Assembly: GCA_002189035.1 (NCBI GenBank)
Contig: NEEC01000002.1
Coordinates: forward strand, 620,001-684,000
Source: Utricularia gibba
Taxonomy: Eukaryota > Plantae > Magnoliophyta
Reading direction: 5' to 3'
Length of the DNA: 64,000 nt
The notes under the pieces are model-generated. The model worked only from the letters and a program-made list of their open reading frames with translations, ran no database searches and had not been told where the DNA came from. A program made the position numbers and the translations under genes. Each line of letters begins with the position of its first letter. Within the stretch, counting starts at the first letter, position 1. Below, one piece after another: positions 48,655-48,843 of this stretch.

Positions 48655-48843
48655 ATGGGGAGGAGGAAGCGAGAGATAAGGCGAATAGAGGACAATAGCG
48701 CGAGGCTGGTGACGTGCGCGAAGGGAAGAAATGCACAGTTGAAGAAAACGAAGGAATTGTCTGTTCTTCCCGATGCGGAAGTGGGTGTCAATTCTGAAGC
48801 TGGGGAAACCTTTACCAATAACATAGCACATTGTACAGATTGA
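48655..48843 (+). pseudogene. Degenerate MADS-box-only remnant (probable FLC-lineage fossil)
   Basis: [45 protein letters not shown] aligns to a MADS domain, with conserved F, R and C replaced. Stop after 62 codons; no I or K exons found downstream. Confidence 0.8.

Follow-up and report, generated by a model that had tools for sequence, protein, structure and literature searches.

The tandem of SEP3 and FLC genes is an ancestral arrangement that has been widely kept in angiosperms (PMC9656651, section 2.3; bioRxiv 10.1101/100990; Ruelens et al. 2013, cited in PMC4852290). SEP3 has also been found beside other partners, with TM8 in Amborella and with SQUA in rice and sorghum (10.1101/100990). 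The locus analyzed here lies in a window of 64,000 nucleotides of Utricularia gibba DNA (the whole stretch under study) and resembles the SEP3-FLC tandem in that a MADS box of the FLC lineage follows a SEP3-type gene on the same strand, as it also does in Sesamum latifolium (locus L006) and in the contig L012. It differs in that the FLC partner is a broken exon 1 (called the fossil below) and in its spacing, which is 380 nt here vs 1.5 kb in L012 and 9.6 kb in Sesamum latifolium.

The second point of comparison is provided by the FLC-like genes of Lamiales (Erythranthe guttata 'AGL27' P0149, Genlisea aurea P0140/P0146 and Paulownia Pfo_024391), with which the fossil shares the MADS exon at 64-71% protein and 70-78% nucleotide identity, the signatures MGRRK.EI.RIED.SAR and KKxKELSVL, and the position of the exon end. 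Unlike these genes, the fossil has no I/K/C region and carries a frameshift, stops, a lost splice donor and changes at invariant positions. It also resembles the MADS-box fractionation relics left after whole-genome duplication, in which one duplicate has apparently been lost and a recognizable fragment persists in the syntenic place, with the difference that at the fossil's locus we only infer a duplication origin. Altogether, we consider it probable (roughly 0.88) that the fossil is an exon-1-only pseudogene, derived from an FLC-like gene formerly placed directly after SEP3 in head-to-tail orientation; as a relic it is ordinary and of a familiar type.

The present ORF occupies positions 48655-48843 of the forward strand and comprises 62 codons (62 aa). 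The initial annotation had described an eroded 62-aa MADS box on the same strand, 380 bp after the SEP3 stop, and the ORF, the peptide and the gap were all found as described. The peptide matched Pfam SRF-TF (PF00319) over residues 10-45 with 35.1 bits (cut-off 26, E 8.7e-9), and a degenerate DNA pattern for the FLC-type MADS start occurred nowhere in the window except at the fossil and in none of 100 shuffles. The MADS domain, for which about 58 residues are expected, is incomplete, a 4-nt deletion having truncated it behind residue 45. The SRF-TF match, the matches to Lamiales FLC-like proteins and the DNA alignment together delimit the former exon 1 of the FLC-like gene to 48655-48838 (+).

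The gene upstream is a SEP3-type MIKC MADS-box gene of eight exons at 46269-48274 (+), delimited by exon peptides and splice flanks. Exons 1-4 lie at about 46269-46453, 47302-47380, 47507-47574 and 47638-47737, and exons 5-8 at about 47807-47848, 47916-47957, 48026-48131 and 48202-48274, the last including the TGA stop (48272-48274); the layout is the canonical one of 185/79/62/100/42/42 nt. Exon 4 matched the Pfam K-box (E 2.2e-10), the best match of the exon 1 MADS box was the SEP3 entry 7NB0, and comparison with Arabidopsis SEP3 (PDB 8CRA/4OX0), made exon by exon, gave 21/23 identities for exon 3 and 28/33 for exon 4. In the maximum likelihood (ML) tree of 49 MADS domains the gene was placed with the SEP sequences. 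By the exon-by-exon test the upstream gene is SEP3 rather than LOFSEP. Since the SEP3 stop ends at 48274, the gap to the fossil ATG is 380 nt (spacer 48275-48654, +). Pfam and Rfam scans of this spacer returned no match; presumably it consists of the SEP3 3' UTR and a remnant of the FLC-like promoter, a function that we only infer.

The fossil peptide is too degenerate for the word-index protein search, which yielded no candidate. An exhaustive search without a word index was run against 1.84 billion representatives. Its top two rows (P0121 and P0124) were discarded as tandem-repeat ORFs and not MADS proteins, and rows with two matching stretches represent fused models; the ranking given here is that of the single-domain matches. 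The public 233-aa model P0125 consists of a SQUA-like MADS exon fused with a MADS, I and K region of SEP3 type, and is probably mis-joined across neighboring MADS-box genes. The best true matches were Lamiales FLC-like proteins with 67-71% identity, vs 58% to the neighboring SEP3. They were headed by the Henckelia 'FLOWERING LOCUS C-like' protein (P0130, 71%) and Paulownia Pfo_024391 (P0131, 70%), the latter sharing the string EDNSARLV with the fossil; further matches came from Sesamum latifolium (P0134), Olea (P0132), Genlisea aurea (P0140) and Erythranthe 'AGL27' (P0149). The FLC proteins of Hevea and Impatiens ranked after these Lamiales matches.

The tandems of SEP3 with TM8 and SQUA reported in 10.1101/100990 are the reason for weighing another origin, in which the fossil would descend from an AGL17-like gene or from some other MIKC-type neighbor of SEP3, TM8-like or SQUA-like in kind. 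AGL17-like domains share the motifs IRRI and DAEVGV with the fossil and 27-29 of 46 positions, as against 30-32 for FLC-like proteins, which have the top score, and 27 for SEP. Residues R4, E7, E12-D13, S15-A16 and V37 are common to the fossil and the FLC-like proteins. A branch of the ML tree with 96/96 support set the fossil apart together with 21 rows of the FLC clade. The fossil groups neither with SEP3 nor with type I genes. The AU tests on 45 columns did not formally reject a forced SEP placement (p 0.137) or a forced AGL17 placement (p 0.157). The fossil offers only 45 informative codons, the 'FLC' group of the tree was chosen in part on the basis of a preliminary fast tree, with only four or five members named FLC or AGL27, and the tree includes a single SQUA-like MADS domain and no sequence labeled as TM8-like; taken alone, the protein tree is suggestive rather than conclusive for an FLC placement.

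The nucleotide comparison points the same way. Over the first 135 nt the fossil was 70-78% identical to seven FLC-like exon 1s vs 64% to the window's own SEP3, and the intact FLC-like exon 1s were 70-90% identical to one another and 63-69% to SEP3. The DNA homology to FLC-like exon 1s runs up to the exon end, and the genes at the corresponding place in two other plants are FLC-like. A TM8-like, SQUA-like or AGL17-like source is hence very unlikely, and the FLC-lineage origin proposed in the initial annotation agrees with the nearest matches, the nucleotide identities, the clade in the tree and the position after SEP3.

The alignment with four intact exon 1s (A1) showed the fossil to be collinear with them from the ATG to the exon-intron boundary. 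As the homology stops at that boundary, a processed retrocopy is ruled out. Between 48790 and 48791 (+) the fossil has lost 4 nt (A1 columns 157-160, TTAT/ATTA in the intact genes), which shifts the frame after codon 45. Past the deletion 31/48 nt are identical between the fossil and Paulownia, and the C-terminal tail of the peptide is a shifted reading of the old exon, aligning to the Paulownia exon 1 translated in another frame. Read in the ancestral frame, the fossil gives F*SWGNLYQ*HSTLYR where the intact genes have FSSRGKLYQYCSTNR, with two stops (TGA at 48795-97 and TAA at 48819-21, +) falling within the former ...FSSRGKLYQY... segment. At the former exon-1 splice donor (48839-48840, +) the CAG|GT of the intact genes has become CAG|AT. 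The initial annotation had spoken of a GKLY scrambled by a frameshift; the frame is indeed lost there, but the damage goes beyond one frameshift and comprises the 4-nt deletion, the two stops in the old frame and the loss of the GT donor. The single 4-nt deletion accounts for the frame, which ruled out the further 1-nt insertion considered within GKLY.

The part of the box that is still open is damaged as well. Residues R6, C21, G24, A27, Q28 and P39 of the fossil each occurred in at most one of 138 MADS domains, and the substitutions at near-invariant positions include F21C, R24G, G27A, L28Q and C39P; the previously noted loss of invariant residues (VTF to VTC, KRR to KGR, LCD to LPD) corresponds to F21C, R24G and C39P, each absent or seen once in that set. 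The fossil has 11 nonsynonymous and 8 synonymous private changes, a ratio of 0.42 vs 0.10-0.31 in the intact lineages, which on these small numbers fits relaxed constraint late in its history. Pairwise dN/dS values between the fossil and the intact genes were 0.09-0.30. Because the first 45 codons are open and the pairwise values are of this order, the decay appears to have been fairly recent or not fully neutral.

An ATG followed by 62 open codons and pairwise dN/dS below 0.3 to intact genes would also be expected of a working MADS-only microProtein, which the initial annotation had suggested, or of a short regulatory peptide interfering with MADS complexes. The beta-strands form the MADS dimer interface in the SRF, MEF2 and SEP3 structures. 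In the fossil, however, the frameshift replaces these strands (FSSRGKLY...) with unrelated residues, and past codon 45 the open frame is only the shifted reading of the old exon. Six near-invariant positions are changed in the comparison with 138 MADS domains, R24G and G27A in the DNA-binding helix among them, and no protein of similar length had even three 5-residue words in common with the fossil. A microProtein is highly unlikely because the dimerizing strands are lost and near-invariant residues of the helix are changed.

The interval between the fossil and the next gene (48844-50244, 1.4 kb) contained no I/K/C exon, gene or RNA detectable by tblastn, Pfam or Rfam. The post-MADS parts of nine FLC-like proteins, used as tblastn queries against 48800-50300 and 48800-64000, returned only noise (E of at least 0.27). 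The same queries found the K-box of the neighboring SEP3 (E 0.005-0.05), and a smaller query set found the K-box in the FLC-like genes of Erythranthe and Genlisea. Pfam and Rfam scans of 48844-50244 recognized nothing. The compact FLC-like genes of Genlisea span 1.1-2.2 kb vs about 1 kb left here before the TATA-like box of the next gene, near 50100. The earlier statement that the 1.4 kb up to the next gene has no room for I/K exons therefore stands with positive controls, and the search extended to position 64000 found no downstream exons that would make the gene intact. With I/K/C exons not detected and AT at the donor, the fossil is not an intact MIKC-type gene.

Two weak signals in the interval were dismissed. 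The minus-strand match at 49189-49224 to the start of an I-domain (E 0.3) is noise, and the second exon-1 relic considered at 49030-49057 had a repeat score equal to the shuffled maximum. The 28-nt segments 48817-48844, which includes the fossil exon end, and 49030-49057 form a direct repeat with 75% identity.

The next gene, TM138 (50245-50661, +), encodes a small transmembrane protein of 138 aa and served as a synteny anchor. Its best matches were Lamiales proteins with 65-73% identity (Handroanthus, Sesamum, Orobanche, Paulownia and Andrographis). Just 5' of its start codon, at 50193-50238 (+), the Rfam model of the histone 3' stem-loop matched below its threshold (23.7 bits vs a gathering score of 34, E 0.0011), probably by chance.

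In Sesamum latifolium a 242-aa gene with SRF-TF and K-box domains, ending in ...GPSVNNNYISGWLP*, lies 9.6 kb upstream of the FLC-like exon 1 on the same strand, and the last exons of this gene (YQPDPITVAAAGPSVNNNYISGWLP*) and of the window's SEP3 match. The Logan contig L012, from run SRR31865550, carries SEP3 exons 6-8 and, about 1.5 kb further on, an FLC-like exon 1, again on the same strand. The last exon of the window's SEP3 (YQPD...) matches that of the gene 5' of the FLC-like gene in both, and a terminal exon of the type ...VNNYIS(G/A)WLP* is common to the window's SEP3 and the syntenic genes. Synteny with other SEP3-FLC loci, which the initial annotation had named as a check, was thus found in Sesamum latifolium and L012. 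Positions 84-2212 of L012, which comes from an AT-rich plant, look like a compact, intact SEP3-FLC tandem.

The downstream neighbor is linked to FLC-like genes as well. In Paulownia the FLC-like Pfo_024391 and the TM138 orthologue Pfo_024388 share one strand, the latter standing 110 kb downstream, and a DUF3339 gene comes next; DUF3339 also follows TM138 in Handroanthus. In Genlisea (L010:176-2243) DUF3339 lies on the minus strand 0.75 kb after the FLC-like gene, with no TM138 between them, and in the window TM138 is present and DUF3339 absent (50245-52800). These look like complementary losses in one conserved block. On either side of the fossil, therefore, the neighboring gene has a link to an FLC-like gene in other Lamiales. 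The 10 kb upstream of the FLC-like loci sampled in Erythranthe, Olea and Paulownia contained no SEP3, where the limit of the flanks may be the explanation, and no MADS box was found within 10 kb upstream of TM138 in Sesamum indicum and Handroanthus.

Gene fragments captured by transposons are common in plants, and with a single exon present the fossil could be imagined as a fragment copied in by a transposon or by ectopic duplication instead of having decayed in place. Against this, no terminal inverted or direct repeats flank it, only short repeats at chance level being present, its strand and position are exactly those expected of the tandem partner, and in other Lamiales each of the two flanking genes is linked to an FLC-like gene. 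We regard such a copy as extremely unlikely. For the exon-1-only pseudogene, the course of events may have been as follows. The ancestral SEP3-FLC arrangement would have existed at the locus, and the FLC-like partner would have decayed in place, its body probably being removed by deletion during genome compaction. Most likely, a duplication had made one copy redundant and that copy was lost. Today the stub presumably has no protein function and would at most be transcribed passively with or after SEP3. For this copy only, the in-place loss of an FLC-lineage repressor claimed in the initial annotation is upheld by homology over the full length of exon 1, by the lesions and by the syntenic position.

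As a positional marker, the stub indicates that the ancestral SEP3-FLC tandem existed in this Lamiales genome, which is very compact, and that an FLC-like copy disappeared from its original site except for 184 nt. Such markers can be used in reconstructing MADS-box gene order and in dating duplicate loss. In annotation, the ORF 48655-48843 ought to carry a pseudogene label instead of being listed among MADS proteins.

The nearest intact relatives of the fossil are the FLC-like genes at L006:10001-20584 (Sesamum latifolium), L004:10001-26463 (Paulownia), L012:2028-7520 and L009:10001-23845 (Olea). In all four the MADS exon 1 is perfectly conserved and the GT donor kept, and SEP3 stands just upstream in Sesamum latifolium and L012. 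A K-box exon sought 5-16 kb downstream in the Sesamum latifolium, Paulownia and L012 genes was not found. The annotated products of Sesamum latifolium, Paulownia and Olea have 128-139 aa and SRF-TF only, and across the nearest intact relatives the annotated lengths are 94-139 aa, likewise with SRF-TF only; the first intron of the Olea gene measures 11.4 kb. The SEP3-adjacent FLC-like lineage has either very long first introns or no K-box. It is very unlikely that the stub has been retained because it is transcribed, for example within a longer 3' region of SEP3, acts in cis as a regulatory block or encodes a short peptide, and/or that it belongs to a SEP3-adjacent Lamiales FLC-like lineage working as short MADS proteins devoid of the K-box.

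The window as a whole is gene-dense, and its introns and spacers are unusually short. Two SBP-box (SPL) genes flank the SEP3 region at 43820-45015 (+) and 56863-58267 (+), the first ending 1.25 kb before SEP3.
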